Shown here: positions 3,098 to 61,759 of the stretch, piece after piece
Layout of the letters: the number at the start of each line of letters is the position of its first letter
Position numbering within the stretch: the stretch's first letter is position 1
Source of the DNA: Ruditapes philippinarum
Taxonomy: Eukaryota
Length of the DNA stretch: 64,000 nucleotides
Assembly: GCF_026571515.1 (NCBI RefSeq)
Contig: NW_026864086.1
Span: forward strand, 434,001 to 498,000
Direction of reading: 5' to 3'
The notes under the pieces: generated by a model
What the model was told of the DNA's origin: nothing
Seen by the model: only the letters and a program-made list of their open reading frames with translations
Database searches by the model: none
Translations under genes and position numbers: made by a program

Positions 3098-3270
3098 TTA
3101 CACGGTGTCACAAGGGCTTGCACTAGCACTGCTCATAGGCACATATCTACGTTCATGCTGCACAGGTATTTCCATGTATATTTTACTTGGTGTGGTTGCC
3201 TCCCTCGACACGGTTTCACAGTCATTCGCAAAGCCATTTCGCGCACGCATATATATATGAGGGCTATCGA
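3098..3270 (-). CDS. Terminal exon: cytoplasmic tail with Tyr motifs
   Basis: ttttcag|TC acceptor is phase-1 compatible with the TM exon. Encodes FDSPHIYMRARNGFANDCETVSREATTPSKIYMEIPVQHERRYVPMSSASASPCDTV*. Confidence 0.72.
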
Positions 3271-5460
3271 CTGAAAATATACAACTGGGTATTGAAAACA
3301 AACACAATGAAGAACAAATGTGTTTATCCAATGACAAAAATCTGGGTGTCTAGGTAAAATAATAATAAAAAACATTTTTATGTAAAACTCGTGTAAAAAC
3401 AAAAAAAAAACAATGTTATTGATATAAATTGATTTGAGGTTAAATATCAGAAAAAAAATACTTCACTATACTCTAATAAGATTCAAATTTTACATTGTAA
3501 AAACCTTTAGGAACATATATCTTTACCGTCACTGATCTATAAAAATTCATTCTAGGATAATATAAAATAAGCAAAAATATAATATAATAAAATATAATAT
3601 TATATAATATAATATAATAATATAATATAATATAATTTAATGAAATGTAATGTAATGTATTGTAATATAATATAATATAATATAATAAAAATGTAATGTA
3701 ATATAATATAAGTAAGAAAAAAATATGAAATTTGTTTGTTTACATTGCTTCTTTTGCCTGCAGAGTAATACTGCAAGGACAATTCCTATAATAACAGCTA
3801 CCCCAAACAACGCACCCAGAACCTTCACCATAATCCCTTCAACATTCGTTTCCCTGTAAAAAACCCAACAGTAGATCACTTTAAGTCGCTGAAAGAATCA
3901 AAGCATTGCAAGCATTGAAGTATACAATGTATGGTTAGTAAAAAAAACTGTACTATGAGTTGATGTATGCACTGGCAATTTCTCCCATCTACAACGTAGA
4001 AGCGATTTTTTGACCCAAAATAAAAAGTACCACAGATTCTAGCTTTGGTAATGAAATGTTTTGACTATCAGGAGATTCGAAATCAATAGAGTAAAAGTTT
4101 TCATGTATCAAATCAGTTTTGCATGGATGCATAAATCTCAATGGTCATCTGTTTTATATCATATTTTTTAATATAAGTTAATGTTTTAGTTTTGAAAGTG
4201 GTATATAATTGTAAGAATGATGATTATTCAAATATTATTAATTGCGTTTTTTAACGTTTCCAAGTTAATGTTACCCATAATCACATACAATTCCACTATC
4301 CATGAGCAAAGACCGAAGACGCCGGCACGTACAAAACATTCGCTTCAATTCATTTCTACCGTGATCGTGTATATTGTTTTAAGATTATGAATAGCGGTTT
4401 ACATTGGAACAGGATTTTTTAGCAATATGAATACTTCTGAATGTCATTTTAAATTTGAAAAGAATATACTTAAGCAATTGATAGATAAATCAAATCGAAA
4501 TTTTAATGAGAATGATTACACCAACGAAAATACCGAAAGAAAACGTAATTAAACTAAGTGTAATCTTAAAATACTTTAGAAAAAAATACAATTAATAATT
4601 TAAATGATGACGATGATACAATTATTTCATGCTATCCATTGTTTGACTGTAATATATCAGATGATTATATTATGATAAACCACTTGTGAAATTTATAAAA
4701 TAAAATATAATTTTCACGGTAGCCGGACTATATCTGAATGCGGATGAAAAAAATATCATAACTCAATGGAAGCACACTTGCCACATGTAATGACCTGTTT
4801 ATTGCATATGTTCCGCAGCAATTTTTCAGACTGGAATTAAATCAAGCAATAACGTAATTGTTCTAATATATTTATTAATTGCTTGAAAATAGATATTTCA
4901 ATGTATAAAATAAATAGTTAATCCACAAAAGTGTCAGCTGGCTGTCCTTGGTGTTCGATTAGATTATCTTAATCCATCAAGCAATTCGCCAAAGATTCAA
5001 CATCCTCTCGACGACCTTTCTTTTGCGGACAACAGGTGAGTGATGACCAGGAATAGCCTTAATATGGGATGTTGGCACACTTGGCAAGTGCGCCAATATG
5101 GCTTATTTGCACACTTGCTCAAATACGGGATTTTCGCATGTCATATTCAGAAAAATGAAACGCATTTTTATTACTAATTATAGTAACATTATGCAATAAT
5201 GCCGCATAAAACATTTTGCAAGCATAATAAAACGGGCAATGTAAAAGAGCTACAATTGACAATTATACACCATTTGAATCTACAAATATTTACCTGGAAC
5301 ATGGTATTTGTTCGCATACATATTTGATTGCAATGTATTTTTTGATGTAAGGAGGGTCATGTGACCCGTATTTGAAATTTGAAATTTGGAGGAGCACATA
5401 ATATGTTAACCGTACATGTAAGATTGGTAAGTCAACATTGCATAGTTTATTTATTTATTT

Positions 5461-5498
<38 letters not shown>

Positions 5499-8400
5499 AT
5501 ACTACAGCTAGAATGTAAATTACTAAAAATGTTTCCCACAGGGAACCTTTTTAACTTTTTCAAATATTGAACGACGTTACATGATCACCCAGTTTATACG
5601 GGTTGTAAAGGAGAATTACGTTTGGTTCATCGAAAAAAACTTCCTTATTCGGGTCGAAGCTCATCTGACTTTTTTAATTTCTTTTATTCAAAAATACGTG
5701 ATCATGCCTAAAACTCGGCTTAAATATCAAACAGGAAGATAGTTAAAGTATTTATCTAAATGATCATGTGAAACTATAGGATTGAAAATTTGAATAATGT
5801 TTTTCAAGTTTGTTTTTGTTGTTTCATGAAATATATTTATAGTACAAAGATTGCTTTAAGATTTTTATTGATTTTTTTGTAACTTGACAATTAAAGGCAA
5901 CTTTCATAGTGATTCCTATAAAAGAAAACATTAATATGTGACGCCCATTATAATTCATTCATCTGCATTAAAATGAATTATCAAAAGAAAAAAAAGATCC
6001 CAAAATCGTAAACTCCAAAAAAAAAAACTTTCGCGTTACCGCATTGAAGATGAACGCTATCTGAATGTTAAATAGAGTAAGAAAAAAAAAACACTGAAAC
6101 ATACAGTCAACAAATTAATTTCCGTATTATTTGACACACTACTATCATTATTTCCGTGTTATAAATTTGATAATTTAAATAGAAAAAAAAATAAAAATTA
6201 CTTTATTTAAATGCAATGTATGCGTATCCAGTTTTATTAATGCATTTAAACTATGTATTAGGCATATTGAATGATTATTTAGGATGAAATCTTAATACCT
6301 ATTTGGGTTCTTCAAAGTAATAAAACAAAGCCCTACCACATTATTAAATGGACAATTATTGTGTAATATGCTCATGGACATTTTTATTTAACTTCATAAA
6401 TGTCCCGGAAACGGACACGTCAAAATAATGAGGTAATTATGAAATAATATTATTTGATAATCGTTATGCTTATAGTTTTAAATAGAACTGTCGATAATTG
6501 AATGAAAATAGTTTTAACTAACAATAAAATTTCATGAATATATGATTTAATGTATAACTTGTATAAATGTACAGCCTTTGAATTTCACAATTTTATATCA
6601 TATTCTTGCAAGTCTCGAATCAAGATATTATATAAATTATTTTTAATTCGTTTTCAATAACGAGGACATTTTTTCCTTTGGCGGAACAAAACGTCAAAAG
6701 AACTAAATTAGGAATAAACAAGATACATTATATACTAGTCACTATTTGTAAAGAAGAAAAAACACGTGAACAGCTGACAGCGTTTTTTACTGAAGCACGG
6801 TACGTCTTTCAGCCTTCTGTAAGGCTTAAGCTCTTTGCTTTTTCGTCACACCATCAACTGAGAATGACGCGTAAATTATCATTTATAAAATAGCAATAAA
6901 ACTTTGAATACATACCCATCTTTTGAGTCTTTGTCAATAATGTCTGTGTCCTTTGATACCGCATAACAATTACTACATGCTTGTTTATTAGGACATCTTG
7001 AAACAATTGACACATCATTCGGATAGCTTATCTTGCTTGCCTCAAACGTAAAAGTGCCTTCCAATGGATACCTTCCAACCTGTTGTTCAACGAAATCATA
7101 AGTTGACTTGAAAAAATTGCTTTTTACCGTTCCAATAAATTTTTTGATAGGTAAAATGTCTTTCTTAGTCCAATTTGAGTAAAAGTCGTTTAAACACTTA
7201 ATTTTGGGTCATTTTGCAAAATAAAATTTATTATTCAGGAAAAAAATGTATTAGCAAACAATGTGAAAGTTTAAAAAAAATATTGTTCAAATATGGACAA
7301 ATCTGGAAAAAATCCTATTCCGTCATGTCAAAAACAAATTAATATCCAACAAAGAAATCTCAATATAAAGCTTTAAAAAGTAGGCATGGCGATGGAATAC
7401 TTACTTCCTTATAAAGAAGCATTGATAGGTCGTCGTCATCTTTTTGTATGTTGTAGATTCTGTAACCTACATTTCCATCACCGTTTTTGTCAAAAACTTT
7501 CATCTTGTTCCCTGATCCATCCAAGTCCATCTTAATATTCAATATTTCATTAACAAGCCCTGTTAAAATGAAATAATGAACACTGTTTTGAACATCTTAT
7601 ATATAAACTTTCTACGCAAATGACCTTCTAGACATTATTAACACTGATTTTAAAGGTATTTTTACAGTTAACGAACTCATGATTTTTGCACACGACCAAG
7701 TACTTTTGGCTAAACCCCCTTGAATCTCTTCAGGCAATGTTAACGGATATTGAAACTTATTGTAATACATGGGGTTTGAAAATAAAAACGTCTAAAACAA
7801 AACCAATGATTTTTGAAAAAGGACAGGTATACTCAGCATACTTTTCATATTTATAGCACACCAATTGAACTTGTAAAATCATTTAAATAACTTGGAATTA
7901 CTCTTTTTAAAAATGGCAATTGGTTTAGAACCCAAAACAGAATAGCTCAACATGCCTCATTTGCTTTACATAACCTGTTTAAAGTATTAACATAGAACTA
8001 CCAATTTATCAGAAATGTAAATTATTTGATTCTCTAGTCGGTCCATTTTGAATTCAAAATCGGAGATATGGGGAATGCACGATGCTAAAGATATAGAATT
8101 AATACATAGTGAATTTTTGCGGAGAGTCTTAGGGGTCAAACAATTAACTAATTTGTCAGCGCTTTATGGTGAGCTTGGTCGTTATCCGTTACATATTACT
8201 AGAAAACATAACATGATAAGATATTGGTAAAAAAATCTTAAACTTAATCATTCATCACTCGTAAAGCAAGCGTATTTACTTCTCAAGTCAGATACAGATG
8301 TTAGTCGACATTTTAACGGAGAAAATGGACTTCTTTTATAAAAGACATCTTGTCAATTCTTGGCTTTTCACATATTTGGGACAATCAGTTTGATATAGAT

Positions 8401-11400
8401 ATACCATATGATACTATTAAACAAAGATTAATTGACACTTTTCTACAAACTTGGTAAGTATCTATCAATAATTCACCAAAATTACAAATATACTTCATAT
8501 TTAAACATTCTTTTGAAATGGAAAAGTATTTAGATTATGTCCAAGACAGTAAATATATAACAGCTTTAACTAGATTTCGAACTTCCTCCCATAATTTATT
8601 TACAGAAACTGGTAGATATGAAAACACTCATAGAGAACAGCGAATATGTAAATCATGCAATATGAAGAGAGTGAATACCACTTTCTCCTTGAATTTCCCA
8701 ACTACCAAGATCTTCGAACATATATTTTAAACCGTACTATTTCCATTGACTATTGCCATCATGAACTTGTTAGTCTCTTGTCGTCAGACCCAAAGAAAAC
8801 TAAAGGTGCCTTAGCTAAATTTTTGTATTGGGCAAATCATAAACGTATCTCTTAATCTGCTATTTTTTCTGTCAGACTATATTAATGAAAATAAGTATAG
8901 TTCCTATAATAACTTGTATTCTTCAGAAAACTGTGTATTGTTAACTGTTTTTTTTTTCTGTACATGTCTGTACATGGGTATCATTGTTATTTGGCTATAA
9001 GCAATGTATTTTGTTTCATGCGTAATAAAATTCGTATTCGTATATAAAAACTTCTCGCATTTATTTTATTATACATTTACTTACCATGCCTGCAAAAAAA
9101 CGAAACATATACAGTTGTATATTTATCTGTGTATATGTAACTTCATATGCAATTAATTACAGTGCTCGAATGTATGTTGAGTGTTGTCAAAAGTCAATAT
9201 TATTATGATAATTGAAATGTATTTTGTATATGTTCACAGCCCCTACACTCTTAATTGATATTTTGTAATGTATTGTTTATGTGTTGGTCGGTAGCCGTAA
9301 ATAACACAATAAAGAGTTGAATCGAATATGATTTTTATCTATTTACTAATTTGTAATAAATAAATGAAATAAACTTTATTTTTTAATGATTTAATGTACT
9401 AGTATCTAGACTAAACAAATGCAATTATGGCAGTGAACTATTAAAAACGTCCTGTCTGGTTTTAAAACATTGTTAACCTAGATTCCTACAAGGCGAATGG
9501 CCCCGATAAGATTAAGCCAATTATTCTTAAAACAACAATGGCATCTGAATACCTTTTTTACAAGACATGCACAATTTGATGTGTTTCATAAAGTATAAAT
9601 TAATAAAGTAAGAAGAAAACTTTTGTATTAAGACCACACATTATCATATAAGTTCAGCTTATTATGTCAAATGCTTTGGGTTTTGTCTAAATGTCTTGAA
9701 AAGACTAAACAGTAAAAGCAAAGATATTATTTAAATGTTAACTCTCCAACTCTTGAACAACGTGGTAGCCAGTATCTTAAATGTTCATTCTCTTAACGAC
9801 AATAGAAGAATTAGGTAACAAGTCTGCATTTGTCTAACAAATGTTCGCATCGATAAACACTACATTCGATGAAACTTAGAAGTTACGTTAAGGAGGCATT
9901 TTGAAACTTTTTTCCAAAGGTGTATGCTGAAATGGTTTTCGGTAGGTCCAATGACGCCTTGGATTTAATAAACAAGGTAATTTGGACAGTCTGTTGATAA
10001 CTATGATCGGGAGATCTGACAATTACCAGCCGAAAAATGTACTAACATTATTCAAAGAACGATTTAGTATTCATTCATTTTTTATGCTAAAAGTGTGTGA
10101 CCCATCCATGTATTTAACTTTTGAATCGATCGCATCTTTACTTTTCATTGTATTGGTATAAATAAGTCCCCAGTCAATGTCACCGCTACCGTAATTGAAA
10201 ATATACAGTATACTACTAGTATTATATATGTATGGGTGTTTACTTATGTTATGACTTTTGATATTTTAGCTTGTATACAATATATGAAAGCGAATATTCT
10301 TATGCAATATGCATGTTAAGTGTTTTAGTATGGTTTTAAGAGATGCTTTCTTACCTTTTGTGTTATCCTTGAAATCTTTGCAAAGGTTTTTTGCGTGCGA
10401 ACCACATTTTGATTTTAGAAATTCATTTGCACCTGCCAGGAGACTCTTTGCTGCGACGTAAGCTTGTGTATCGTATGTATCTAGTTTGAAGTTTGGATCC
10501 TGACTGTAGTCATTAGAGTCATTGCATTGCTCGACATGTGTTTTGTCAAAACTGAGATCAAAATAGCACTTCCTCTCGGCTTGAACAAACAGCATAGCCC
10601 ATGGATCTTCGATGTAAGTCTTAGATTTTATGTTCTGGGCGTGGTTTCGAAGTTCTCGGTCTTTGTACATTTCGAGTGAAACGGTGAAAGAACCCAAAAG
10701 AATTTGGTTTTTGTCACTAGCTAATACGGTTGTATCACGTGCCCATGCTTCAGATCCTATGAAAACGAAATCCCCTCGCTTCATTTGTGTAGTGAAAGCA
10801 GACATGATCTTAATAAGATGATCTGGGTACAAGAAAACTACAACTATCTTTGCTTGAGCGTATGTTCTTAGTTTGTCATAGATTTGAAACTCGCTATCGC
10901 CCTCGTTAAAGGAAATGTTCTGAATAACACAAATCTTGTTAGAAGCTGCGAATTCTTTGACTTTATCTCGACCGGCTTCACCATAATCGCCAGCACTATG
11001 AATGATTTGTATGTAATCTGCATTCAACTTCTTCATCATTTCTACCATGGCTTTTGCTTGAGCATCATCCGGTGTAACTACACGCATGAAGTACGGGAAT
11101 TTAGACCTGTCACTCAATGCCGGGCTTGTTGACGCGTAGCTTATCTGTACAAACTTCAGAAACGACAATGTTGAAGCTACAGCCATGCTAACAGTGCTTG
11201 TGTATTCGGCAACATAACCTAGAATTTTATCATCGACCTTCACAACTGTGTTGTTGTCAATCGAAACTCCATTAGCATGTAGATCGTATATTTTCCTTTG
11301 GACAACAGCTGGATTCCTACATGAATTGATGATGATTGAGCCCACTTTAAGCTCAGGATAGAAGTTCGAATAATCACCACTTTTCTTGTTTACTTTTTCT

Positions 11401-14400
11401 ACGGCAAACCTTATAGATTCAGCGAGTTGGTATCCGCTATTGTCTGATATTGCACCACACTCTTGCGTACCGCTCGTATGAAAAATGGGAACTACACCAA
11501 CTAAATATACGTCGCCTGGCTCAAATAAAACACGTTCTTGTAATTCTAATAAGGGCGTGCATTCAGAGCATTTCTGACCAGGTGAACACTGGGCTCTGCG
11601 AACGTCTGGCCACAGTAACTCTTCACCAGATGCACGGTAATCACGGATTTTATTCAAGTCCACTTTAACTTCATTGCCAATCATTTTACCTATCTAAATA
11701 ACAGGAAAATGACATTTTATACACGGCATACTCTGTACAGTATCAGGGGCAGGTAACAGAGAATATATACGTCACTAACCCAAACTATGATAATAACTAG
11801 AATAGAAAATGCAAACAAGAAATCATTAACTCTTCTGTCAGCAAATTCTCACAATTCCCTGATTATATTTACATTTCCTATAAGCATAAAACATTCTACA
11901 ATATATACACATTGTATTCAACAATTTAGAGCTAAAAGCAAAAGCAAAAAAGAAAAGTCTATATTAGTGCCTGTCAAAATAATCCCCTAGATTTCGGAAC
12001 ATTTAAAAAAGACTACGCCTCCTGAGTTAATAGATATACCGGAGCATAAATTGTTCAGTCGAGATGAAAATAACATGTCGTGTATAAAATAAACAGTTTG
12101 ATCAAATACAAATTAGAACAGTGTTATAGAAAAGGGAAGAATTCGTGAACATAAACATTAAAACGATTTATATTAAACCATTTTATTTTAATAGTTGATT
12201 CAATTGCATTTCAGTAAAGATATAAATCGTTCGAGCTAACTCAAACACTATAAGCAGAGAGTTTAAGAAACAGGAACATAAATTTTCTTTTAGGTAACCC
12301 TTGTATCTGTTTATTTCAATAATCAATTTTAATTGCATTTCGTGATGTATTCAATATTTTACCGACCGTGAAAACACATCCATAAAGATAAAATGTTCGC
12401 GTTTGAAAAGATACAAAAAATGTGACATTCCTTACCATGCTTCATATCTTAAATAGACTTATTCATCTTTCATTCTTGATTAAACCACAGAACATTTGAG
12501 GGAAAGTTTCAAAATTTGTGTTAAGTGTATAGCGAACTATGCACACGATAATTAGGCGACACTGGTGTGTCAGCTGATCTTGGTCAGCACGTTATCGCAC
12601 GGGTAGAATATGTTGCCGCCAACAGGGTAAAGGTTAATATGTTATTATCACATTGGTTATGCCAAATGCTGAGAAAATGAAAGATCAATTAAAGCTTATA
12701 TAAAAGTATACTATTAGACCTTTCCTCAAAACTGTTTTAAAAATATTACCTTTTCGAATTTGATTTCATTCGAACTCTCTGAAGACTGGATATTAAATAG
12801 CTCATACGATGATTTGCCGTCCTTTTGCGTGACTGTCCCTGATTGGTCAAATTCCAAACTTTCGTCTTGTAGGGAATCAGGTCTTAATAGAGACGTTACC
12901 TTGTTTAATATTACGCTACCATTTTTACAGAACACAATTTATATTAATTATTGTAAAAGAAATTGCATGTTTGAAATTCAATTAGATGTAACAGTTAAAA
13001 AGCATTTAATAAATGTAAACGCATTTGCATTATACGATGATATTAACAGAAATAAAATAAAAAGCAACAAAATAGAAATTTCTTACGTCCAGGAGAAGTC
13101 GTTTTGGAAGTCGATTTGGAGTCCGGAAATAGCGTCGATCATATCTCCCTGCTTAAATGATTCAACAAATCCTGTACATGAACCCGTTTTTGTCTGGCAA
13201 TATTCCGTCCGGAGTTTCGTCACGGCTTTGATCATAGTATGTACAGCTTTTATAGCGTAACTTATTTGCAATGGCTGCGCGTGAAATGATTTTATTTCAT
13301 TCAGTAAAAAGAGGAAAAAAATTTTTACGTGAATGCACAACCAAGGACCTTTTGTAGAGGACATAAAATAGCCATTGGTTCGATTTAATTCTTTATCAAA
13401 AAAAAAAACTGTTGGGTAAAAACCCCGGTTAGTGCCGAGGGTTTGGGAAAAAATTTTAATAGGGGCGAAAGAACCGAACCCCTTTGATTTTAAATCATTT
13501 TCCCGTTATCCCCGTTTAAATAACGGATGTCCAAACTGCGTCTTCGAAACATAATGATTGACGGGGCGAGTATGAGACTTACCTAATGACGTAAGAAAAA
13601 ATTTTGCAAACGTAATTTTGAAGGTTTTAAAACACAAATTCCGTTAATAGGAGGTTGGAATTAGGAACCCCAATGAGAATTCCTTAAGGGTATTTTCGAA
13701 ATTTCGTTTACTTATGCCTTTTTGATCGCCCCGTCCTATTTAACGCTTAAAAAACTTGTTCTTAGTGTACAAAAGTTGTGTATCCTCTGACCATTTTTTT
13801 TTTCAATAAAACTGCAACCCTTTTCCCCTTTAAAACTTTTCCAGGGTTTTTACCATCATTTTAATAAGAAAAAAAAATTAAAAACTTTATTTTCATATCT
13901 TACGATACAAAAAACTTATATCTCTATCTCCACAGTTGTCTATAAACTAAAAAATTTTTAAAAACAACTTTTAAAAAATTAAACCCCATAGTTTTTTTTC
14001 CACTCAAATATAAGTTTTTTTTTGTAATTTAAAAAAATTATGTGGGCAAAATTTATAAAGTATTGACTGGTTACAGAAAATAGATTGTTAAAAAATTTTT
14101 TGTGCTTATTCCGCTTTTTAAAAGTGCTGACCCTTCTAGGTCTTTGTTTCAGCATATTTAATATTAAAAGATGATACGTTTAAGGTGAAAGGGCTGAAAG
14201 ATTTCATTTTTACATTTTTTCTCTGAACGACCAACATAAACCGAGTACTTTTTTGTTTTTTTTCTTTGCTTCTGGGGTTTTTGTCCTTTAAAGACGATAA
14301 TAGGAACCTATTGACCCTAATTTTCTTAATTAGGATAATTATGGGATAAATAGGAATCAATTTTTTTAGGAAATTACGTTATGGGAAAAACACTTTAATT

Positions 14401-17400
14401 AGCTTTTTAATTTAAATTATGGAAAATCATTTTTTAAGATGTTATCAGTATAGGGAAATCATTTCTTGAGGGGTTTAAATAGATGCGGGGGTTTTTTCTA
14501 AAATTTTTATTTTTTTTGGGAGCCTTTAAAAATTATTTTTGGAATTCTTTTTTGTTCAAAAAACGTTTAATTTCTCTGTCGGTACGTATAATTATTTAAC
14601 AGAATATCTTTGTAATAGCCTTTAACCGTTAATTAACCCTATCTTTCCCAACCTGAAAATTTCCAAAAGAAATTTCCCTTGAGTAGTTGTTTTTAAAACA
14701 TTACATTTTTGCGATTTTTTTGATCGCTGTTTTTAAAAATTTGTTCCGTAAAAATTTAAATTTAATGAACAAAAATTTTTGAAAAGGGAACTCCAAAGGG
14801 AAAATATATATTTCGCTCATAAAAGTAGAAAAGGCCTTAAAGATTACTATTTACCTGCGAATTAACGTTTACATGTCTTTGGTGACTTTTTAAAATTCCC
14901 AAAATTACATATGCCTATTTAAAAATTTCCCAAAAATGGTTGCATAGGGGGGGCTTTTTCAAAATTTGGATATTCCGGAAAAGGAAGGCCCTAAAAAAAA
15001 AAAAATGTTAAAGTTAAAATTTAACGAAAGTGTATCGGGGTTTTTCAATTACCATTATTTCATTTTTTCTTTAGAAAAAGTTTAAAAGATTTTATATAAC
15101 CATGGAAAAAATTCTACTTTTAAATGATCCCATTCTTTGTGGTTAAATCTTAAATGCCGAGTAAAATTTATTTACTAATATCTAATTCCCCTTTTAACCC
15201 AAGTAGCAAGCAAAAATTTTTAAAAAAATTTCTGAAATGTGATGGAAAAAATAAAATTTTGATCTTTTAACCCCATGTACTTTTCTCATAACTTTTCTTT
15301 TCCAACTTTTTGCACATCTTAAATTTTTTAACTGATAAAAAAATTATGTATTTTTGGAGGGAAAATGGGTTAATAATATCTTCATATTTACGGTTGGGCC
15401 GGAATATCCCCCCGGGGGGACCCCCCCAATTGGGGGTAAAAGGCTTGCGAGTTACCGCCCGGGGGGGTTCCGGGGGAGGGATTTTCGGGGTCCGAACCGC
15501 AAACAAATGTCGATATTTTTTTTGCTATTTGCCTTTTTTCTATTTAAAGGTTTACCTAAATAGATATATGCTCAGGGAAAATTAAAAGTCATTTCATCCT
15601 AATATTTTTTTAAAAAGCTAGAAAATTCCTTTAAAAAACAAAGGGAAATGATCTCCTAAACAATATTTTTCCCTTTTAAAAAGACGTCATTAAAACCGCG
15701 GTTTTTTCAAAAGTGCGTTAAAAAAGACTTGTTGTTTTGGGGACGCGACTCTTTCCCCGGCCCCCCCATGCAGATGAAATTTTCCGGGATGGGTAAAACT
15801 CCGGGAAACGCCCTCGCTATGCAGAAAAATAATTCTGTTATTTAAGTTGTAAAATTCTACCCATTGTAAGAAAAAACTTGGAAAAGACTTTTAAATTTCC
15901 AGAACATATTATATTTAGGTAAAACCCTTTTAAATTTTAAAAAAATTGGCGAATAAAGCAAGAAAAAATATCTAACATATTTTGCGGTTTGGTCGGAAAA
16001 TCCCTCCCTCGGAAACCCGCCCCTGGGGGGTAACCGCAGCCCCGTTTTCCGCCCAAAGGGCGGGTCCCTGGGACGGGTATTCCGGGCCAAAACCCCAACA
16101 TATGACAGATATTATTATTTGCATATCAACTGGCGTTTCCCCTGGTTTTGCCCATGCCGGGAAATTTCATCTGGCATGGGGTGCCAGATGGTCGCTGCCA
16201 AAAAACAACGTCATTTTGCGCACTTTAGAAAGAACGCGTTAAAATGGCGTCGTTTAAAAAAGGGAAAATATGTGCTTAGGTGACTCTTTCGCCCTTGTTT
16301 TTCAGTTTTAAGTTCATACCTATTGTAAGAAAATAGTTATGGGTGGAAGACTTTAATTTCCATCACATTAAACATATTTTAGGTAAACCCTTTTAAAAAT
16401 TAAAAAATATGGCGAACTCGGGGAACCCCCCATGGCGGAAACTCGGAAGCCTTTTTACCGCCCAATGGGGGGGTCCCCGGACGGATATTCCCTTTCCGAA
16501 CCGAACAATGACAGATATAATTTTTCTTGCAAAGCAGACTGGCGTTTTCGTCGTTTTATCCATCCCGGGAAATTTTATTGGCATGAAGGATGCCAGATGG
16601 TCCGTGCCATACAACAAAAGGTCTTTTAGCGGGATTTTTTGAATGAAAACCGCGTTAAAAGACGCAATTTTAAAAGGGGAAATATTCTTAGGTGACGTCA
16701 TTTTTGCCTTTTTTATTAATTCTTTTTTTAAAATTTTATAGCTATTTAGGAAAATGTTATGGGGTTTTTGACATTAATTTCCCTGAACAAAAATTTTTTT
16801 GAGGTAACCAATTTTAATTCAAATAAAGTGGCAGAATATGAAGAAAAAAAAATCTGACATATTTTAGTTCGGGTGGAATATCCCTTTTCCCCCGGGAACC
16901 CCCCCATGGCGTTAACTGGAAGCCCCGTTACCGCCCAAATTTAAAAGAAATGAAGATATTATTATTAATCGAAAATTTTGCGTCAATTAAAGACGCGTTT
17001 CCCGTTTTTTTTTTTTACAAAGAAAAAAAAAATTTACAGTGCGTAAAAAAGATAGTCAAATTTTTTACAAAAATTCAGAAAAGTTACTTATGCTTTTTTT
17101 TTCATTGTAATTTGATGAAATGACTATATATTTTAAAATACCTATAATATAACATTTAAATTTTTCGAAAATGTTTATATAAAATATTTTTGGGCCCCTT
17201 AAAAATAAAAAAAGGACTGTCCCCTTTTTTTTTAAATTAAACTTTACAGGTAAATCTGTGAATATTTATTAAAATTTTTTGGGCCAGTATTATTTATCGT
17301 TATGTTATTTTAATTGAAAAATTAAAAGGAATTAGGGCCCAAAGGAAAACTTATTCAATTCAGTTTTTCACTACTTTATAACCATAACGAGATAATGGGC

Positions 17401-20400
17401 TTTAAATTTACTCGAGGAATCTCAGAGTTATTGAGCCTCCTTTTTTTTAAAATTCAGCTATGAATGTTTACAAAATTAAATTTAAAAATAAGGTATTGGT
17501 TAATTAATGTTTAGAAAAAATTTTTCAAATTCTTTTTCATTTTTTTTTTATTTTAACTTGTCTTTGTAATGAAATTAAATTTTTAATAAAAAGTAATGTT
17601 TGTTAAGACGGGTTAAATGCATTGTTACAGTTATGACAGACGTTATTTTCGAATACGTATTTTTGGAAAAATCTTTTTGAAATGAAAAATAAACGAGATG
17701 AATGGATATTAAAAGAAATGGAAAAATAAAAACAAAATTTTAATTTACTTTACCCTTTTCGAAAAATTAAAAAATTGAATTTTTTCCCGGGTTTTGGTTT
17801 TTCAACTTTAAAAAAATATCTATTGTTATTCTTTATTTTTTTTTTTTTATAGATAAAAATTTTTAAAATAGGTTAAAATTTAAAAAAAGTCATTCAAAAA
17901 TCTAAAAAAGGGGTTTTTGTTGTTGCTTAACGAAAATGCTTATTCCTATTTTACAAATAATTATAAATGAACATCAACCAAAAAAAATATAGTCATTGAT
18001 TGTTCAACCCAACTTTGTTTTCTTGCTGATTTTAATTGGTCGTAAAAAAAATCAATTTATATTTATGTTTACTTCTGTATATACATACATCAAGAAAAAC
18101 GGGTGATTTAAGTTTGGGGAAATTAAAAGAAAGGTGGAATTTAACTAAATTTGGGTTCCTTTCACAGGCGTGAAAATTTTTTAATTCTAAAAATGTATCT
18201 ACTACGCACAAAAATATCTATACGCACAAAAAATCTAAATTTTACGCACAATAAATCTATTACACGCACAATAAAACTTCTACCACAAAAAAACATTCAG
18301 CAAAAAACCTTACCCTTTAAAAAGCAAATTCTATTATCCCAAAAAAATTTTATTTCTACCACAATCCCTTTTAAGCACAATAAACCATTTACACGCCTAA
18401 ACCCACCCATCCAAAAAACCTATTTTAAAAAACATTTTTTATAAATCAGTAAAAAAATATATCAAAATTAGATCAGCACCCAGTAGAAAAGCTTTTACAA
18501 AATTTAAAAAAACCAAAATTAAAAAAATAAACGCTAGAAATAAATGTCCTGTAATTTCCCCAATGGGAAACCCCGCCTTATAGTGTAAAAACCAAACAAA
18601 ACGAATTAACGAAAGACCCTTCAAAATAAAATTATATTTTTTAAAAAAAAGTTAAAAATTTTTAATGATTTTCTTCTTGTACTAATTTTATATTTGAACA
18701 AACCCGAAACGAGCTTTTTATCTGGATCAATCGTGCAAAATTTTGTATTTTAAAAACATTGCCCAGTCTCGTGCCGTTGTTGAAAACCTATCTGAAGCTC
18801 GTTTTTGTTTTTTGGTAGGCACCTAAAAATTTGGGAAAAAAGCCCCGGCCCCCCAGAGCTTTTTTTTGGCCCAGAACGCCCGAATAAAAAAAAACTAAAA
18901 AAATTTTGTGAGGAACCTAATTAATCAAATAATGTTAAAGTTAAGGCTTACAAGCAAAAAAAGCAGTATAACGTGTTTTTTGAACTTTTCGCGTTATAAC
19001 GCCTTTATTCGCGTTATTTCGCCATTGGTTTCGCGTTATTACGCCTTGATTCGTGTTACTTCGCCTTTTGCTTCTCGTAATAATGCCTCTTGATTCGCGT
19101 TATAATGCTTTTCCAATAGTTTATTTCATTTCATTTGATACAATATTAGCAAGGCTTTAATAAATCTGACTTTGTCTCTTTAGGCTTGTTAATAACATAA
19201 TTGTAACATGGTTTACGTAATATTTTATTTCTGAATAGTTGGAGTGTGTGAAGCTTGAATTACTTTTCATAACACAAAATTTGCCATACAAGAAAATTTC
19301 ACAGAACTTAAAAATCGGTCGTCTCTTCAAATCTACTCATTTGTTAACCCCTTTAACCTGGTTATAATTCTCGATATATTACATCGGAAATGTGTGGTTT
19401 ATATCACGCAAACTACAAATACATTGGATATTTTGACGTTACATGGTGGCTAATACAACACTAATACTAGGCTACCTTAATAAAATAAGAAAGGCAAGAT
19501 AAACATTCAAAATGGCCGCGCCAGAATCGTCTATTCAACTGCATATATATAGTTTGTCCTTGCTAAATGCTGATGTGGAAGGTAATTATTCAGTGATACG
19601 TGATTTACATGTACAGTTATAAGGGAAATTATCTCACATATTGTGGACATGTATTTGGTTAATCTCCTACCTATAACTGTTCCATTGCTTGAATCCCTGT
19701 TCAGAATTTCAACAGCTTTCTCAGCGGCTATATCGTCTACCTGGCATGTTTCAAATGATTCTAAACCTGCAAAAAGAAAAATGTTGTTTGTTTTGTTTTA
19801 AAAACCAATATAATGAGGTTTTTATGTTATTTTTTTTTTATGCCGTACCAAAACCTAAACGATTGCTTCAGATAGGATTTTCAACAACGGCAACGAGACT
19901 GGGCAATGCTTTAGAATACAACAACTTTGCACGAGTGTAGTAGTAAAGAAGAGAAAAGATCAATATGAACTATGTAAATAACTTTAAACACGCCATTACG
20001 AACTACCTTTTAATTATGTATCGTCTTATTTTAAACAGGCATATAAATTATATTAGGGTGGTAAGTATACTATTCCGTAATTAAGACAGGTCATTTTCAT
20101 CATCTAGATCTATTTTACAATATAATTTGTCCTTATAATTGTGTGGGTTTTTTTTTGACAAATTAGGAATAAAAAGATAAAGAGAAATAGTTTATTTCGG
20201 TAACCCACTAGTATATATTTACAGTATCGGCAGGTGGAACAAACCTAGTGCTATACCTTTTGATGATAGGAAATGTAAAAATTGTTTTATTTTGGAAGAT
20301 GAATTTCACTTTATTTTAGAATGTTCCCTATATAATGAATTACGAAAAAAATATATAAAAAAACACTTTTGGGAAAGACCAAATATACCTAAATTTGTTA

Positions 20401-21914
20401 CATTGATGAATTCAGAAAATGAAATAGAAATTAGAAACTTATCAATGTATATATTTAAAGCTTTCGATGTTCGAAACACTATTCTTTATAGTTAATCAAA
20501 AGTTTGTCCCAAACGCTGTATAACTGTATCTTACATAAACTTTTTACGTTTTGTTTTGTGATTTACTTCCTTATTAATAGGATGGTATCTTTCCTTAGTA
20601 TTTATTTACCAGTTTATGAATTGAGACATGTTGATAGTATATTATATCTGTAGTTTACGTTTTCTGATTGCTAAAAATACTGTGTAACTTAATGATATAT
20701 GTTTTATAAAGTGTGACATTGACCATTTGATTGTATTGTATGCTTTGTTATATGTACTGTGTATGCATGGACATATTGTCCAAATGTACTTTGAAATAAA
20801 CTTGAAACTTGAAACTTGTTACATACAATGATTGACGAATTAAGTTGATGTGTAAGTGTTGAACCTCACACAATAACATTAAAGTGACATTACATTCACA
20901 TTTATTCGCTGTTAAGTTCAGTTGAATTAGTGATATATTTCAAAAGATTGACCATCATAATGGTAATTGACCAATAATTGATGATGAAAAATGTTTATGA
21001 TACCAAATAAAACGACCTGAATTATAAAAAAGACTACCCCGCTCGTTTAAAGAATTGAACGTTACCAATATATTCTTTAAGGTATTTATAGAAATTTCTT
21101 TCCATTGGTCACATAAATTATTGATTATATACAGTAAAATATAAAGTTGAATACAATTGTGGCAAAATGTCAAGTTGTTTTGATCTTTTAAGGTTCATTC
21201 ACAAATTACACTTGGATGGGCGTAATGTCACTTTAAAAGAATTGCTATGAAGTTTGATTCACAGTGCATACAACGAGATACAACGCACATACACAAAGAG
21301 AACGCTTAAAATTACTTAATTAAAGTGACATTATGCCCATCTAAAGGTATATAGTGAGTGAACAGGTGAGAGTCAAAAAAATATTCATTTTGCCCTAATT
21401 CCTTTTGATTTAATTCTTTACTTCGCATAAACAATAAATAACCACCGGATTTAAACGAAATTTCAGTAAATATCATTTAGAATTTACCTTAACCTTCAAT
21501 TTATAAAAAGACTGGGCAGTCTTTTATATTTTAGGCAGATTTTTAATTTTATCCTATATAATCTGTTGGCCAAACATCATTTAAACAGTCAATCTTTTGA
21601 AATATAATGTCAAATTCAGCTCAACTTGACAATGAAAATATGAGCATAATGTCACTTTAAATGAAACATAACTTACCTATATTAATAGGCAAATTTCCCA
21701 CCTCATTCAGTTTTTCAATATACCATTTTACAGCTTCAACAGTCATTACCGAATCAATATCAACGTCCGTGCTACAAGTTTGTCCGCTACGTTCAAATAC
21801 TCCAAACAGACCGGCCACCATAATGTCTCCTTGTACATTGATATATCCGTAACAACCACCATATAAAAATGTTAAAACAATTAAAGCCCCTACAATATGG
21901 GTAAATTGTTTCAT
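3098..21914 (-). CDS. Multi-exon type I membrane receptor: signal peptide + two tandem mGluR/class C GPCR-type Venus flytrap (ANF_receptor) domains + single TM + short Tyr-motif tail (roughly 1100-1200 aa)
   Basis: Phase-compatible GT-AG exons: 21914-21677 (MKQFTHIVGAL...GDIMVAGLFGV), 19766-19671 (GLESFETCQ...GTVI), ~18880-18700 (corrupted; GVLG..QIGFSTT..FAR), one or more corrupted exons in ~14330-13087 (ends YAIKAVHTMIKAV...DFSW), 12882-12750, 11693-10355 ([57 protein letters not shown]), 7559-7405 (FDKNGDGNVGYRIYNIQ), 7079-6916, 3853-3744 (TM), 3270-3098 (stop TAA). AATAAA lies on the minus strand at 2879-2884. Confidence 0.8.
3578..3710. repeat. (ATAAT/GTAAT)n pentanucleotide microsatellite
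   Basis: Direct reading of the sequence. Confidence 0.9.
3744..3853 (-). CDS. Transmembrane exon of the double-VFT receptor
   Basis: tttacag|G...CAAT|gtaaac. Encodes ETNVEGIMVKVLGALFGVAVIIGIVLAVLLCRQKKQ (hydrophobic helix plus basic stop-transfer). Phase 2 matches the upstream donor at 6916. Confidence 0.82.
5447..5497. repeat. (TTTA)n microsatellite
   Basis: Direct reading of the sequence. Confidence 0.9.
7625..9042 (+). mobile_element. 5'-truncated, decayed non-LTR retrotransposon (LINE; RTE-X/CR1-like RT C-terminal half), antisense within a receptor intron
   Basis: Frameshifted remnants: FA(H)DQ in place of the RT FADD motif, WGLKI, YGELGRYPL, RFRTSSHNLFTETGRY...RICKSC..ESEYHFLL. Ends in AATAAA + (TTCGTA)n tail at ~9024-9042. 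Confidence 0.85.
10355..11693 (-). CDS. Large exon encoding most of the second Venus flytrap domain
   Basis: Corresponds to ORF 10266-11684, with acceptor tttag|ATA at 11693 and donor AAAG|gtaag at 10355. Classic mGluR VFT motifs are present. Confidence 0.92.
13270..18960. other. Low-accuracy (homopolymer-inflated) assembly segment
   Basis: Abrupt excess of long A/T/G/C runs. The exon at 18728-18821 differs from its clean inverted copy at 19841-19937 mostly by run-length errors and small indels. Repeat copies here are similarly corrupted. Confidence 0.8.
15380..16940. repeat. Array of GC-rich palindromic MITE-like repeats in direct and inverted orientation
   Basis: Recurrent motifs CATATTT.CGGTT.GG..GGAATATCCC, GGCGGTAAC...GTTACCGCC and AAAACGCGTTAAAA at ~15380, ~15975, ~16410 and ~16860. 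Confidence 0.6.
18960..19110. repeat. Short tandem repeat with a TTCGCGTTAT(A/T)(A/T)CGCC core (~21-bp period)
   Basis: About six degenerate copies are visible. Confidence 0.7.
19841..19937 (+). pseudogene. Inverted duplicate of a ~97-bp fragment of receptor exon 3, lying in intron 1
   Basis: The plus strand encodes AVPKPKRLLQIGFSTTATRLGNALEYNNFARV (a VFT motif). Its reverse complement aligns to 18728-18821. Confidence 0.85.
20222..20818 (+). mobile_element. LINE 3' fragment (RTE-X/CR1-like C-terminal zinc motif, 3' UTR and tail)
   Basis: IGRWNKP...RKCKNCFILEDEFHFILECSLYNELRKKYIK. Ends in AATAAA(CTTGAAA)n at 20796-20818. Confidence 0.82.
20879..21236. mobile_element. TTAA-flanked MITE (Kolobok-like, AG...CT termini), copy 1
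   Basis: TTAA|AGTGACATTAC ... GTAATGTCACT|TTAA. Confidence 0.72.
21320..21660. mobile_element. TTAA-flanked MITE (Kolobok-like), copy 2, inverted relative to copy 1
   Basis: TTAA|AGTGACATTATGC ... GCATAATGTCACT|TTAA. The internal ATATTTCAAAAGATTGAC is shared with copy 1 in opposite orientation. Confidence 0.72.
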
Positions 21915-32212: not shown

Positions 32213-34633
32213 CTAAATACCCTGAAAGTAGTCATGGACGTTTTGCAATTTATCACTCATTGTTTGTCTCTTAAACAGAATGTCTGGTTCATTGTCATAC
32301 CCAAATAAACGACAATCGTTCTCAACAATCTTTTTCAATTTTTGTATTAACTGTATTGGAACACTTCTAAAAGCTTGTACCAATGCTTCTTGATGCTGTG
32401 CCTTCAGTTCCTCTGAATAACTTTTACTTGCATACATAGCGGATTGAAAAGATCTTGTAAACGTGTTTTCGTCTATAACTCCTTGGTCATCTTTGAAGTA
32501 CGGAATGTTGTAATACTTTGATATCTTTCCGCGAATTTGTGAACTCGACCAAAACCTCTGAAGCAGTTCAAACTGTGGAATTACAGATTTGTACTTTGTG
32601 TACATTTGATACATTTCAGTAATCCAGTTTATTGAGTGTCTATATTTAATTTCTGATTCAATTTCTTTAATTGTTATGATTCTGTTTAGAGTTGCGTTTT
32701 TGTTAAGATATTTATTCACTAGCACGGCAAGGTCGTCAGAAAAGGTTTCAAGCTTACCAATGAAATCAAAATTTGATTCACACGGATTACATAAAGAAGA
32801 CATGGGATAAAAAAAACTAGACGTCATATTTTTATCATCTAACATCACTATATATTTAACAAGCTCTGTAAACGTAACATCATGTCCCAAGTTTAATGTC
32901 CTCGAAGCTGTGTTATTCCTAACTTTAGAAATTATGTCAACTCCTACGGTATACCAAACGTCGCTCGGATGATAAAAATACCCTTCATATAAAGAGAATA
33001 GTCTAGAATACGGATCTCTTACAAACATGAATTTGTGTCTTGAAAGCGAAGATATTTGCAGGTCTGTGAGAGCGTTATTGTAACTTTTTTTATTTCCAGT
33101 TTCCAAGTAGTTAAAAAATGTATCGACAAATGCAGATGCGCATTTTGGTATTTTACAATAGTAGAGATTGTTTGTTTTTGAAAAATTACTATGAACAGCT
33201 ATTGAAATAATTTTGCACATCTCTTTTGCGTGTTCCAATCTTCTATTCACTTCTCGCATCTGTGCTTCCTGTGATGAGCAAAACATTATAAAACACTTGA
33301 ATAAAAATACATGTGTTTAAGTAAACAAAGGTTGATAGCGGTAAGATATCAAATAATGAAATTAACAATCATAGTTTTGACATTATTTTACAATTTCAAG
33401 TCACGCTTGTGAAATATCTTTTACATCTTTTACATTCCTTTATTAACAAGCATGCATAATCAACCTGTACTTAATCTGCTAGATAGCTAAAATGGACTTG
33501 TCCATCTTAAATCTGGACAAAATGAATTATCTTTTAAGTGAACTCATAGAAATCACTACTGTCTGAATAACAAACAGTGCAGACCATTATCAGACAGCAC
33601 TGACTGATCATGATCTGCACTTATAACATCGGTACTGTCAGGTTTAGGGTTAAAACAAAGTAACATACGAGTTCATTTACCATTGTCATTATCTGATCAT
33701 GCAGTTTGATAGAGCTTACATTCCAGTCTCTGTTTTGATCCTTATAGCTGGCACCATTACTAAAATTGTTTCCTAAAAAAATCAAATTAATACCATAATC
33801 ACGCGTACATATTTGGCCGAAACATTTTTCACATTAATAAATACTGCATACAAATTAGAACAAAATAATCTTTTTTTTTTAAACTGGTATTACAATAGTT
33901 TTATCTGCATGACAGTTCAAACACAAACATTTTAATATCGTTTTTATTCTAAATCCAATAATAACATGCATTTACAACTTAGGTATAAGATTTGAGTGAC
34001 GAAACATACGGAAATCCGAGGTCCATATATTCGTTTAATTTGAAAAACATGTATTTGTTAATTGAAATTACAGTAGACATTTATGGATGTCATTTAAACA
34101 AAGACCATTTGCAAGCCTTTATATTCTTTTTTTTAAGTAGAATCTACATTTGTTATGTTATCCTTGTTGTTCTTTCGCCGTTATCACATTGATTAAAATC
34201 AATAATAAATGTTATTTATTTATACCTGAATCTTACTCTTTTGTATCATATTCAAACATAAAAACACGCTCCCTGTTGTCAAAATATGACACCCCAGAAA
34301 AAAGGTAACCAATGAACGTGCATCTGAATATGATATTGTTATCGCTTTCCGTTTTCCTGGCACCACAATAATACCCCAGCAAAAATAAGCCAATCAACGG
34401 GCATGCTTTGGAGTGCGGGTAACTGATACCTGCACTCCACTTAACTCATTGTGCATGTATATGTATACGATTTAACTATGACACATTTTCAACAAAAATG
34501 TTCCCCAAACTATGATACAATTATCTATACCTGAACCCATGAGAATAAACAAAACGAACGCTGTTAGAATGTATATCTGCAAACGTTGTAACAAACATGG
34601 AATTGTCGGATTCATCCCTCTGACCGGTGTCAT
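32213..34633 (-). CDS. Golgi carbohydrate sulfotransferase, CHST8-14/HNK-1ST family (Sulfotransfer_2), type II membrane protein
   Basis: Exons 34633-34531 (MTPVRGMNP...IYILTAFVLFILMGS, signal anchor), 33772-33681 and 33268-32213. Motifs: YCKIPKCAS (5'-PSB), FMFVRDPYSRLFSLY (3'-PB), LCNPC..FDFIGKLETF, DCRLFGY. Confidence 0.88.
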
Positions 34634-41846: not shown

Positions 41847-44551
41847 TTTGTTTTTGCTTTGCAAGCAACTTCATTACAAGCTTTTTTTAAATAACCTAAA
41901 CGTGTACCTCCCTTATATACAATGTATATATATTGTATTTCATACATAATAAGCAGTTTGGAAATAGACATGTTCCAAGTAATTATCCTAAATAAAAAAA
42001 TAATCTAAGGTTTCTTATAAGTTTTGCCAATAGTTTGGTAGTCTCTACATTTTTTAAAGCATTGCCTAGGATACAATGGGATTATGAGTATTTTATCATA
42101 ACCGCCGTATGAACACACCTGCGGATGTATAAAATTTCAAATATTACAAGTTCATGTTAAATGTTGAATACTGCTTAAGCCGGTGCTATGGGCATGGACG
42201 GTAACTTGCACTTTCCAGTACTATCCATGAACAGACTCAATCAAACCGAGTCTGCAACATTTTAAATATTATCGTGTTGTGCGCTTTGTAGGGATTCTTT
42301 ATTTCTCTTTATTTTACTTTGGAGGCGACAGTGACATTACAGAATTAATAACCTGCAGATAAACTCATGAAATTCTTTTTAATGTGATCAACATTCCATT
42401 TAAGATTACATTCTAGGTATGCAAGGAGGAATTTAAACTTCAATATATTGCAGAACAATAAATGCTGCCATATTAAGTATTGCGCAGATCAGTTATAAAT
42501 TAAATCTATTTATTCAGAATATATTAAATGTTCATGTCTTCTTCATTTCATAGTCAGTAAGTTGATTGTATGTAAAAGGTTTTTACTGCAAATATTTACT
42601 GACTAGCAAACAGCTGCTGCAAATCTCTCGGGGCAAATGTACATGCATGGTTTTCATATTATATAAAACAAAACGTGTCCTTGTTCTTTTGTTTTTATTT
42701 CGGACAAACAAACAATTTTCAGTCATGTCAAGTGCGTGATTTCTAGCATCAACACGCAATTTCATGGAATATGTTACATACTCTTTAATCAAGATAAATT
42801 CTCCATTGTTTTTCAAAAGCTTGAACGCCACAAACATACAATTAATCCATGAATTTACAACATTGAATTAGAAAAAGTAAAGGAAACAGATGTGTCTTAA
42901 ATGTTTAACAACATCCATCATGAAAATAAATCGGTCGGTCATGTCACGGACATCTGTACTTTTCGATGAAGGTGACAAATGATTCATATTTATCCAAATT
43001 ACAGTACCATTCATTTGACCTAAATATGCTTATTTGCAAAAGATTTGTCCACTGGTGTTGCTTCCAGAGGTTAGCCAAAATCATTTTCCGGTTTCAGCAC
43101 AATGTGACCTTCCTTAACTGTGCTTGTGCGTCGTAAAACAAAAGAAAAAAATGCAAATGAACTTTTGTTTTAAATACCTATGATATCATCTGAAGAACGT
43201 AGCAATAAATATAGAAAAGTTTGTAATATAAGTAGCAAAATATAAACAAAGTACAATTTTGACTTTCATAAAAAATACTAATTCACTATAAATGTTGCCA
43301 CACAGCAATAGATGAAAAAAAATGTTCAGTCATTCTAACAATGAGTTACTTTTTGAAAACTATAGCAGAACAACTAACATTAAAAACTGTTAATAAATAA
43401 AAATAAAAGCATTTCTGAGACATAATGCGAAACTCTTTTTCAAACGAGTAGTAAACGAGACCCCTATACTACTCAAACGTACCAACTTATCATTCGTGCA
43501 TCTTTTGCATTGATCCCTCTAACAACAAGGTGTGGACTTCAGTGATGTTATATTTTCTGGTCATTCATAATCATTGACTCCATACTTTAAAGTGTTAAAA
43601 TTGAGTACCACTTAAGCTGGTGCTTGGGGCGTGAGGGATGTTGCACTTTTTCATTTTCTCTCATGTACAGACTCAATCAAACCGAGTCTGCAATTTTCAT
43701 GCAATTTGTTGTGAATAATGCTTCCGAGGGATCACCTTTTGTCTAGATTCTTATATAATGTAATTCTTTAGGATAAAAAGATTGGTAGAAAAAAGAGCGT
43801 ATTTTCATGAACATTAAAATCAAGCTTAAGATATATTACAAAATGGTTCTTTATTATGTAATGTGATATATTATCTCTCATTCTATTTCTACAATATTTT
43901 TTCTTTCTTTCATATGCTTATAAAAGATTTGAAAAATATGAAATATACAAATAAATGTCATTGACAGAAATAACATGCCAGTGTATATATGTTCAAATAT
44001 TACCCTTCAAATTACTGAAACCGAAAGTGGTTAGTATTCTAGAAATACTTAAAGGTTTTTATATGGTTTTTTTTTTTTTTTTTTTTTTCGGTGTCCTGTT
44101 ATAGATTCCAAATAGTTACTTATTGGCCTTTTACCTGAACCATCTTTTTTTCCTTCTTTTGCGTTTATGGTACTCATTACAGGAATATAAAGTGATGTAG
44201 TATACGGGAAATCAAAATACTACTTAACTCGCAATTCGATCATTTTATTGTAAACAAGTTCAAGTTCAGTGCTACTTTCTTCAGTTGATAAAAATCTTAT
44301 ATGTTCTAAAAACATTAGTTCAATGATATAAAACTCATTTTTCCCTTTCTAAAGAAGAATATATTCAGTGTTTCTGAGACCATATGTGCCTTTAACACTT
44401 AGCATCAGTGTACAACAGAGATAGGTCCCCTTGTGCATGGAATAGTTGCTGGATGCATACATATGACGGTGAACAGTCGTTTGATAATATTTTCAGGGTC
44501 AGATATATTTTTGCTTAAACTTTTTACAATTGTTTACTCTTTAAGGGCACA

Positions 44552-61675: not shown

Positions 61676-61759
61676 AAAATGGAAATTAAATTTAACTTCA
61701 CCTGACATTTAGATCAAATTCATATTAACTGAAACTTTAAAAAAAAAAAAGTGAACAAA

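Follow-up and report, generated by a model that had tools for sequence, protein, structure and literature searches.

A mollusc family of putative receptors with tandem Venus flytraps on a single transmembrane helix, and a clam member with a decayed distal flytrap

We analyzed a stretch of 64,000 nucleotides of the clam Ruditapes philippinarum (contig NW_026864086.1, positions 434,001 to 498,000, hereafter the window) and focus here on one gene of its minus strand, which runs from an ATG at 21914 to a TAA at 3100-3098. The window is AT-rich eukaryotic DNA (about 30% GC) and corresponds to C12573:434001-498000 in an assembly that totals 1.4 Gb in 15,874 contigs. The locus is a multi-exon gene for a type I membrane protein of a heterodont clam, and its best protein matches are found in venerid and other heterodont clams. 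By its sequence, it belongs to a mollusc family of membrane proteins in which two tandem Venus flytrap (VFT) domains of the metabotropic glutamate receptor (mGluR) type are carried by a single transmembrane (TM) helix followed by a short tail. In our judgement this is probably a receptor gene still in use, whose distal flytrap (VFT1) has decayed and whose proximal flytrap (VFT2) would be the only working one.

A first-pass annotation of the window, made from the letters alone, had proposed a single-pass receptor with a signal peptide, two flytraps each followed by a three-cysteine motif, an acidic stalk, one TM helix, a tail of about 60 residues and a stop codon at 3098. Apart from a large part of VFT1, to which we return below, all these elements were found on the sequence, the tail being 63 residues long. 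Every exon boundary that we read follows the GT/AG rule, all phases agree, and the residue at each junction matches the one in the closest full-length relative, P0172 (Mercenaria mercenaria LOC128549591, 1119 residues). All exons lie on the minus strand. Exon 1 (21677-21914) starts with the ATG and encodes an N-terminus that resembles a signal peptide and ends in CYG, then the initial ~55 residues of VFT1; it is 55% identical to residues 1-80 of P0172 and ends in phase 1 at the donor G/GTAAGT. Exon 2 (19671-19766) continues VFT1 with 70% identity to P0172 80-112, is in phase 1 at both ends, and is flanked by the acceptor TTGCAG/G and the donor ATAG/GTAGG.

From 12882-12750 through 3270-3098, the exons join in phase and are collinear with P0172. 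They start with the C-terminal hairpin of VFT1 (12750-12882, 54-56% identity to P0172 438-482, ending in phase 0). The following large exon (10355-11693) encodes the first three-cysteine linker (C-x5-C-x2-C) and nearly all of VFT2, is 73% identical to P0172 and 81% to P0001, and ends in phase 1. The last hairpin of VFT2, with its NGDGN..Y.IYNIQ motif, is in a separate exon (7405-7559, 75-77% identity to P0172 and P0064, ending in phase 0). The second three-cysteine motif and the start of the acidic stalk were placed by alignment to the relatives at 6916-7079, an exon ending in phase 2. The next exon (3744-3853) encodes the end of the stalk, one hydrophobic helix that aligns with the TM of P0064 and P0002, and the basic stop-transfer sequence RQKKQ, and ends in phase 1. 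The last one (3098-3270) encodes the cytoplasmic tail, with 44% identity to the tail of P0064. The two junctions singled out by the first-pass annotation, 6916/3853 and 3744/3270, are exact, in phase and bounded by GT and AG, and the polyadenylation hexamer AATAAA that it had placed about 215 nt downstream lies at 2884-2879, 214 nt past the stop.

VFT2 is intact. Its 446-codon exon (11693-10355) matches the Pfam profile ANF_receptor with an E-value of 2.7e-38. When this exon was used to search solved structures, the top 56 matches were all mGluRs (best mGluR3, E 1.4e-37), and the chains of T1R3 and CaSR came next at about 1e-19. Hence, the label of mGluR-type flytrap given beforehand was correct. 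The residues that bind the backbone of the ligand in mGluRs are Ser165, Thr188, Asp208, Tyr236 and Asp318 in mGluR1 numbering. In the alignment of VFT2 with mGluR3 these alpha-amino-acid positions are kept, with Thr for Ser165, Glu for Asp318 and the other three unchanged. The two arginines that hold the distal carboxylate of glutamate in mGluR3 are replaced by Ser and Leu in VFT2, so its ligand is probably not glutamate. As for other domains, no exon of the gene has a Pfam match to 7tm_3, NCD3G, a kinase or a cyclase, and a search for 7tm_3 over the whole of contig C12573 and the contigs carrying paralogues found none. The absence of seven-transmembrane (7TM), kinase and cyclase domains claimed in the earlier reading thus stands, and hidden 7TM exons, which we considered as a candidate, were rejected on the empty contig-wide search.

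The 63-residue tail contains the motifs YMRA, YMEI and YVPM and ends in DTV, followed by the stop. YMEI and YVPM are kept in the closest relatives: the block TPSKIYMEIP..RRYVPM is common to the window and P0172, the equivalent in P0176 is ..YFEIP..RRYVPI (hence YFEI and YVPI), and P0064 has a partial version, YMEIP..RYVRM. YVPM fits the consensus for the Src homology 2 (SH2) domain of p85. As motif matches, YMEI and YVPM may be read equally well as SH2 ligands and as YxxPhi sorting signals.

The picture is different for VFT1. Two tandem flytraps had been claimed for this gene; this holds for the relatives, and VFT2 is intact here, but only about 240 of the ~480 residues of VFT1 can be encoded by the locus, the rest being decayed. 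We built a profile from 20 relatives with two flytraps and searched it on both strands of positions 1-26000 of the window. It matches only the minus strand, at VFT1 positions 10-105 and 366-485, and positions ~106-365 have no match on either strand of this region. A genome-wide search with P0172 revealed no further piece of VFT1 on contig C12573. For comparison, in three paralogues of the same genome (on contigs C8171, C14158 and C5863) a single open exon of 263-309 codons covers VFT1 residues ~171-438, and residues ~110-172 are in a separate exon.

Both exons have left traces in the window. Of the large VFT1 exon, the 3' portion survives undamaged at 13087-13348, its 5' edge being a putative one, and ends in phase 2; its last ~67 codons (13289-13087) are 59% identical to P0172 371-436. 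The 5' part (13349-13800) is decayed: seven relatives align collinearly to 13800-13300, with about 27% identity (P0172 ~210-353), in two other frames (-2 and -3) and across in-frame stops. The region 14100-13290 has 12-20 stops in each minus-strand frame, and when these are read as X, profile positions 219-309 still align to it (E 0.01). The separate exon, number 3 of the ancestral gene, has a sense remnant at about 18728-18887 on the minus strand, which is frameshifted and diverged (34% identity to P0172 110-143, with a change of frame after LQIGF). Part of the same exon is also found at 19842-19937 on the plus strand, in the wrong orientation for the gene (profile positions 131-164, E 8e-08; 56% identity to P0172 131-162). 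The two copies are the arms of an inverted repeat, 74-85% complementary, and the plus-strand copy is the better preserved. This hints at an ancient inverted duplication, or a rearrangement, that was linked to VFT1 loss.

All of lobe 2 falls in the gap, as do the positions that contact the ligand. With VFT1 reduced to a remnant, the gene can encode one intact flytrap only. The locus should not be annotated as a two-VFT protein. Shorter isoforms were found among the relatives (P0198, P0203, P0189, P0002); these are truncated at the N- or C-terminus, and none parallels the internal loss of VFT1. The paralogues in this genome (C8171:10075-19909, C14158:14788-22921, C5863:15296-19733, and others on C1423 and C12060) have an open large VFT1 exon and identities of 50-54% and 36-40%; the first three lie on short contigs and may be separate genes or alleles. 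On C8171 there are two copies of the equivalent of exon 3, at 10075-10266 and 12036-12221.

To characterize the family, we searched 1.8 billion representative proteins with HMMER and obtained 3315 matches, many of which are about 1100 residues long and have two VFT stretches. The layout can be read directly on them: signal peptide, VFT, C-x5-C-x2-C, VFT, hairpin, C-x5-C-x2-C, stalk, one TM helix and a short tail. ANF_receptor, present twice, is the sole Pfam domain in all eight members scanned, with no 7tm_3, NCD3G or kinase in these eight relatives, and precomputed Pfam assignments agree for about 35 more. A true mGluR of Haliotis recovered in the same searches (P0197) does show NCD3G (PF07562) and 7tm_3. 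The scenario in which all orthologues would carry 7tm_3 therefore fails. The architecture occurs in dozens of proteins of bivalves and gastropods, and all named members are molluscs of these two groups. The bivalves are Mercenaria, Ruditapes, Mactra, Mya, Dreissena, Sinanodonta, Potamilus, Tegillarca, Pinctada, Saccostrea, Mytilus and Solemya, and the gastropods are Haliotis, Patella and Nucella. In the databases these proteins are labelled "uncharacterized protein" or "hypothetical protein", or automatically "GRM3-like", "GRM4" or "GRM7-like". For this family, names like "GRM3-like" or "metabotropic glutamate receptor 3" mislead.

Four members are open reading frames (ORFs) of 1099-1131 residues that fill Logan contigs of 3.6-4.4 kb; being intron-free, these contigs are mRNA-like. 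In an alignment of 40 sequences, 37 have the single C-terminal TM helix at the same place, and the five backbone-binding positions are kept in both flytraps. A motif Y-[LIVM]-x-[PA] occurs within 45 residues of the TM in 26 of the 37 tails. The AlphaFold2 model of P0172, built on this alignment (predicted local distance difference test 85.6, predicted template modelling score 0.75) has two full flytraps, one long TM helix and a disordered tail, and its best matches in the PDB are the flytraps of mGluRs (E 3e-33, TM-score up to 0.87). The double mGluR-type flytrap on one TM helix without a catalytic tail is thus, as far as sequences tell, a real architecture conserved in molluscs. The gene of the window shares with the family the proximal flytrap set between two C-x5-C-x2-C motifs and its NGDGN..Y.IYNIQ hairpin, the signal peptide, and a short tail after one TM helix. 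At the juxtamembrane position it reads YMRA, where the family has Y-[LI]-x-P. Its distal flytrap is short of about 250 residues relative to the complete domain of the other members.

The longer HMMER matches have another layout, in which three to five ANF_receptor domains are followed by a single 7tm_3. Such poly-VFT G-protein-coupled receptors (GPCRs) of class C were found in bivalves, gastropods, Octopus, a nemertean, a brachiopod, a hemichordate and amphioxus. One example is XP_074641006.1 of the nemertean Tubulanus polymorphus; others are in Sinanodonta, Physella, Babylonia, Bulinus, Lingula, Saccoglossus and Branchiostoma. Some of them sit on mRNA-like contigs of 9-10 kb. Ten such proteins, or pairs of entries, of 1850-2870 residues (P0003, P0004, P0006, P0008, P0015, P0026, P0019, P0031, P0036/P0205 and P0037) are all annotated as "uncharacterized". 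Three entries of Polypterus senegalus (P0016, P0022 and P0024, "CASR protein, partial", 2496-3927 residues) have seven to ten VFT stretches with fragmentary domain coverage. They seem to be gene models that merge tandem CaSR-like genes, not real poly-VFT proteins. We searched the available full-text literature, subscription journals being outside its scope, and found no paper on poly-VFT class C GPCRs and no description of the mollusc single-pass family; the first-pass annotation had likewise not recognised a described receptor class.

To place the two layouts relative to each other, we built a FastTree phylogeny of 63 VFT domains, which was midpoint-rooted and has Shimodaira-Hasegawa-like supports only. 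The single-pass family's distal VFT and the first VFT of the five-VFT GPCRs are sisters in it, and the proximal VFT clusters with the second to fifth VFTs of these GPCRs, both with a support of 1.0. Ordinary mGluR-like receptors with a single VFT fall outside both clades. The single-pass family and the poly-VFT GPCRs therefore share a tandem-VFT ancestor. The tree shows, within the limits of these supports, the shared ancestry of the tandem layout and not the direction of change. We infer that the single-pass family arose by loss of the 7TM domain.

Is the gene of the window still working? Outside the decayed stretch the frame stays open for about 886 codons, which at the local stop frequency of 0.066 per codon has a chance of about 6e-27. 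Identity to P0172 is 55-75% in the intact pieces versus 27-34% in the decayed ones. Three phase-1 acceptors, at 13408, 13390 and 13348, lie at the 5' edge of the surviving piece of the large VFT1 exon, and each of them would join exon 2 to it in frame. The ORF predicted across the gap has roughly 890-910 codons. Between 66 and 85% of the sampled words of the VFT2 exon are present in 20 sequencing runs of 11 studies. The contig sets of these runs span only 17-178 Mb versus 1.4 Gb for the genome, and none of the runs is recorded as RNA. As the runs holding these words have contig sets of the size of transcriptomes, the VFT2 exon is likely transcribed. All in all, we clearly favour a working gene with a vestigial N-terminal piece over a pseudogene: the gene would still be in use, with a product of about 890-910 residues made of this vestigial piece and one working VFT.

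Several points weigh against this view. The junction between exon 2 and the surviving piece of VFT1 is a prediction, and the candidate acceptors are weak to moderate. The likely transcription of the locus is drawn from the word content of run contigs, not from reads, and no transcript-derived protein of R. philippinarum was found in the protein databases. The juxtamembrane motif is YMRA in the window versus YLRP in P0172 and Y-[LI]-x-P in the family. Finally, the ligand, the dimerisation and the function proposed for the tail come from what is known of mGluRs and from motif matches. The two clearly dead ancestral exons, the degraded juxtamembrane motif and the missing database protein might thus be taken together as signs that the entire locus is a pseudogene in the course of being lost, or a relic that is still transcribed, with the erosion of VFT1 as just the first damage to be seen. 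We regard this as unlikely, since the other codons stayed open while the decayed part fell to 27% identity with 12-20 stops per 270 codons. Furthermore, the intact exons have kept every splice phase together with their identity to the Mercenaria relative, an in-frame path exists across the gap, and the VFT2 exon recurs in many small run assemblies.

One might also suppose that the locus encodes two complete flytraps and that the missing VFT1 exons were overlooked, given that exons 1 and 2 are there and conserved, as are VFT1's last ~110 residues, and that the relatives do carry two full flytraps. We find this very improbable: neither the profile nor seven full-length relatives match anything for VFT1 positions ~106-365 on the two strands of 1-26000, the genome-wide protein search adds no piece on the contig, and the homologous exon is recognisable yet full of stops. 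Even less credible is a gene model incomplete at its 3' end, with a transcript that would run on into 7TM, kinase or cyclase exons. No point in favour of it was found; a stop closes the tail exon and AATAAA comes after it, P0172, P0176 and P0064 keep the tail right to its end, the whole contig is devoid of 7tm_3, and about 40 relatives end in the same way.

If the gene is in use with a single working flytrap, its likely function would be that of a sensor of amino-acid-like ligands, or of a co-receptor, acting through its tyrosine motifs. VFT2 would probably close on a small ligand, either some amino acid other than glutamate or something similar to one. The closure might then be passed on through a lobe-2 cysteine tethered to the three-cysteine linker, and from there through the stalk to the single TM helix. 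This cysteine, which is invariant, and the three-cysteine motif that follows each VFT presumably resemble the disulfide between the VFT and the cysteine-rich domain of mGluRs, which couples closure onward. By analogy with class C receptors, dimerisation is expected. Since the tail has no catalytic domain, the output would depend either on proteins recruited to the tyrosine motifs (YMEI and YVPM in the window, a juxtamembrane Y-[LI]-x-P in most relatives) or on a partner receptor.

The same molecule could serve other ends. As a decoy or co-receptor, it might use its VFT to pair with class C GPCRs; alternatively, it might act in clearance by endocytosis, like NPR-C, its YMEI and YVPM then being YxxPhi sorting signals. 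Class C flytraps act as dimers, NPR-C is known to consist of a VFT, one TM helix and a short tail, the two distal tyrosines of the tail suit YxxPhi as well as SH2 motifs, and true class C GPCRs, which are possible partners, are numerous in the genome. A VFT protein of Entamoeba, anchored by glycosylphosphatidylinositol and lacking a 7TM domain, acts without a TM through partners (PMC12965686). These observations fit adaptor signalling just as well, however, and the recurrent motif near the membrane of the relatives, Y-[LI]-x-P, is not a YxxPhi signal, so we hold decoy or clearance to be somewhat unlikely, though it deserves more weight than the pseudogene. In the genome, C8247:97000-168000 has at least 10 VFT exons (22-31% identity to VFT2 of the window) and three 7tm_3 matches, an arrangement that suggests genuine class C GPCR genes in tandem.

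Put together, these elements allow a broader proposal, which we advance tentatively: an undescribed class of mollusc receptors, neither GPCRs nor kinases, would carry tandem mGluR-type flytraps on a single TM helix, would have come from poly-VFT GPCRs that lost their 7TM domain, and would signal the presence of amino-acid-like ligands through conserved tyrosine motifs or partner receptors. The gene of the window would then be a natural member with its outer flytrap deleted, working on the inner one. Class C flytraps signal through a 7TM domain or, in Venus kinase receptors (VKRs), through a kinase. If the proposal is true, a conserved and expressed family that couples two flytraps to a bare TM helix would be a third mode of output, and a natural system for studying the transmission of flytrap closure in the absence of a 7TM dimer. 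The poly-VFT GPCRs range from molluscs to amphioxus and seem not to have been studied; the kinship of the family with them suggests that a branch of class C evolution has been overlooked. Since free amino acids serve bivalves as osmolytes and as cues for settlement or feeding, the proteins of the family are candidate amino-acid sensors.

Other features of the window were noted along the way. Within a long intron of the gene, 15270-16930 contains several copies of one interspersed repeat on both strands, with similar Pro/Gly-rich pseudo-peptides in several frames. Fragments resembling reverse transcriptase occur at about 8048-8855 (plus strand), where Pfam found nothing on the short ORF tested. 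Two apparently intronless ORFs match sulfotransferases: 32213-33286 on the minus strand (Sulfotransfer_2, E 4e-29) and 44433-45698 on the plus strand (galactose-3-O-sulfotransferase, E 2e-37). A single-exon ORF of 645 residues at 54325-56262 (plus strand) has a RING finger and a B-box and is TRIM-like, of a kind expanded in bivalves. Finally, 61751-63968 on the plus strand holds a retroelement in which a gag-like ORF precedes one for reverse transcriptase (RVT_1, E 3e-22) and which runs past the end of the window.

How does the gene compare with known systems? Its layout is reminiscent of NPR-C, which is established to have an ectodomain of the ANF_receptor fold, a single TM helix and a short non-catalytic tail. 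Yet NPR-C has one VFT and binds peptides, the clam VFT is of the mGluR type, and no NPR chain is among its best 60 solved relatives. The likeness is hence, on these matches, one of analogy and not of membership. Compared with the receptor guanylyl cyclases, no cyclase domain was found in the gene. VKRs are invertebrate receptors with a class C-like VFT on a single TM (PMC3703292, PMC4026697). They differ by their intracellular tyrosine kinase and single VFT, there being no kinase in the gene of the window or its relatives. The tandem flytraps reported in the searchable literature are limited to bacterial BvgS/EvgS, CdgH and the trypanosome cyclases. The sensor kinases BvgS/EvgS and the receptor adenylate cyclases of trypanosomes have tandem VFT-like domains outside the membrane and then one TM (PMC4352136, PMC6027212). 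Their domains are, in contrast, periplasmic-binding-protein domains unrelated to the clam VFTs, and their cytoplasmic domains are catalytic; the resemblance is a convergence of layout only.

The closest comparisons are within class C. With the mGluRs, especially mGluR2 and mGluR3 of group II, the mollusc family shares a homologous VFT, the backbone-binding positions, the lobe-2 cysteine and the motif of the terminal hairpin. It differs by having two VFTs in one chain, no 7tm_3 and no nine-cysteine NCD3G, of which C-x5-C-x2-C is only a vestige, and in the clam VFT2 the arginines for the glutamate side chain are replaced. Of the features of class C GPCRs, the gene of the window thus has the VFT and lacks both NCD3G and 7tm_3 (PF00003). 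The poly-VFT class C GPCRs, lastly, also have tandem VFTs in one chain, and these form fully supported clades with the distal and proximal VFTs of the single-pass family. They end in a 7TM domain after three to five VFTs, whereas the single-pass family has two VFTs and one TM helix.

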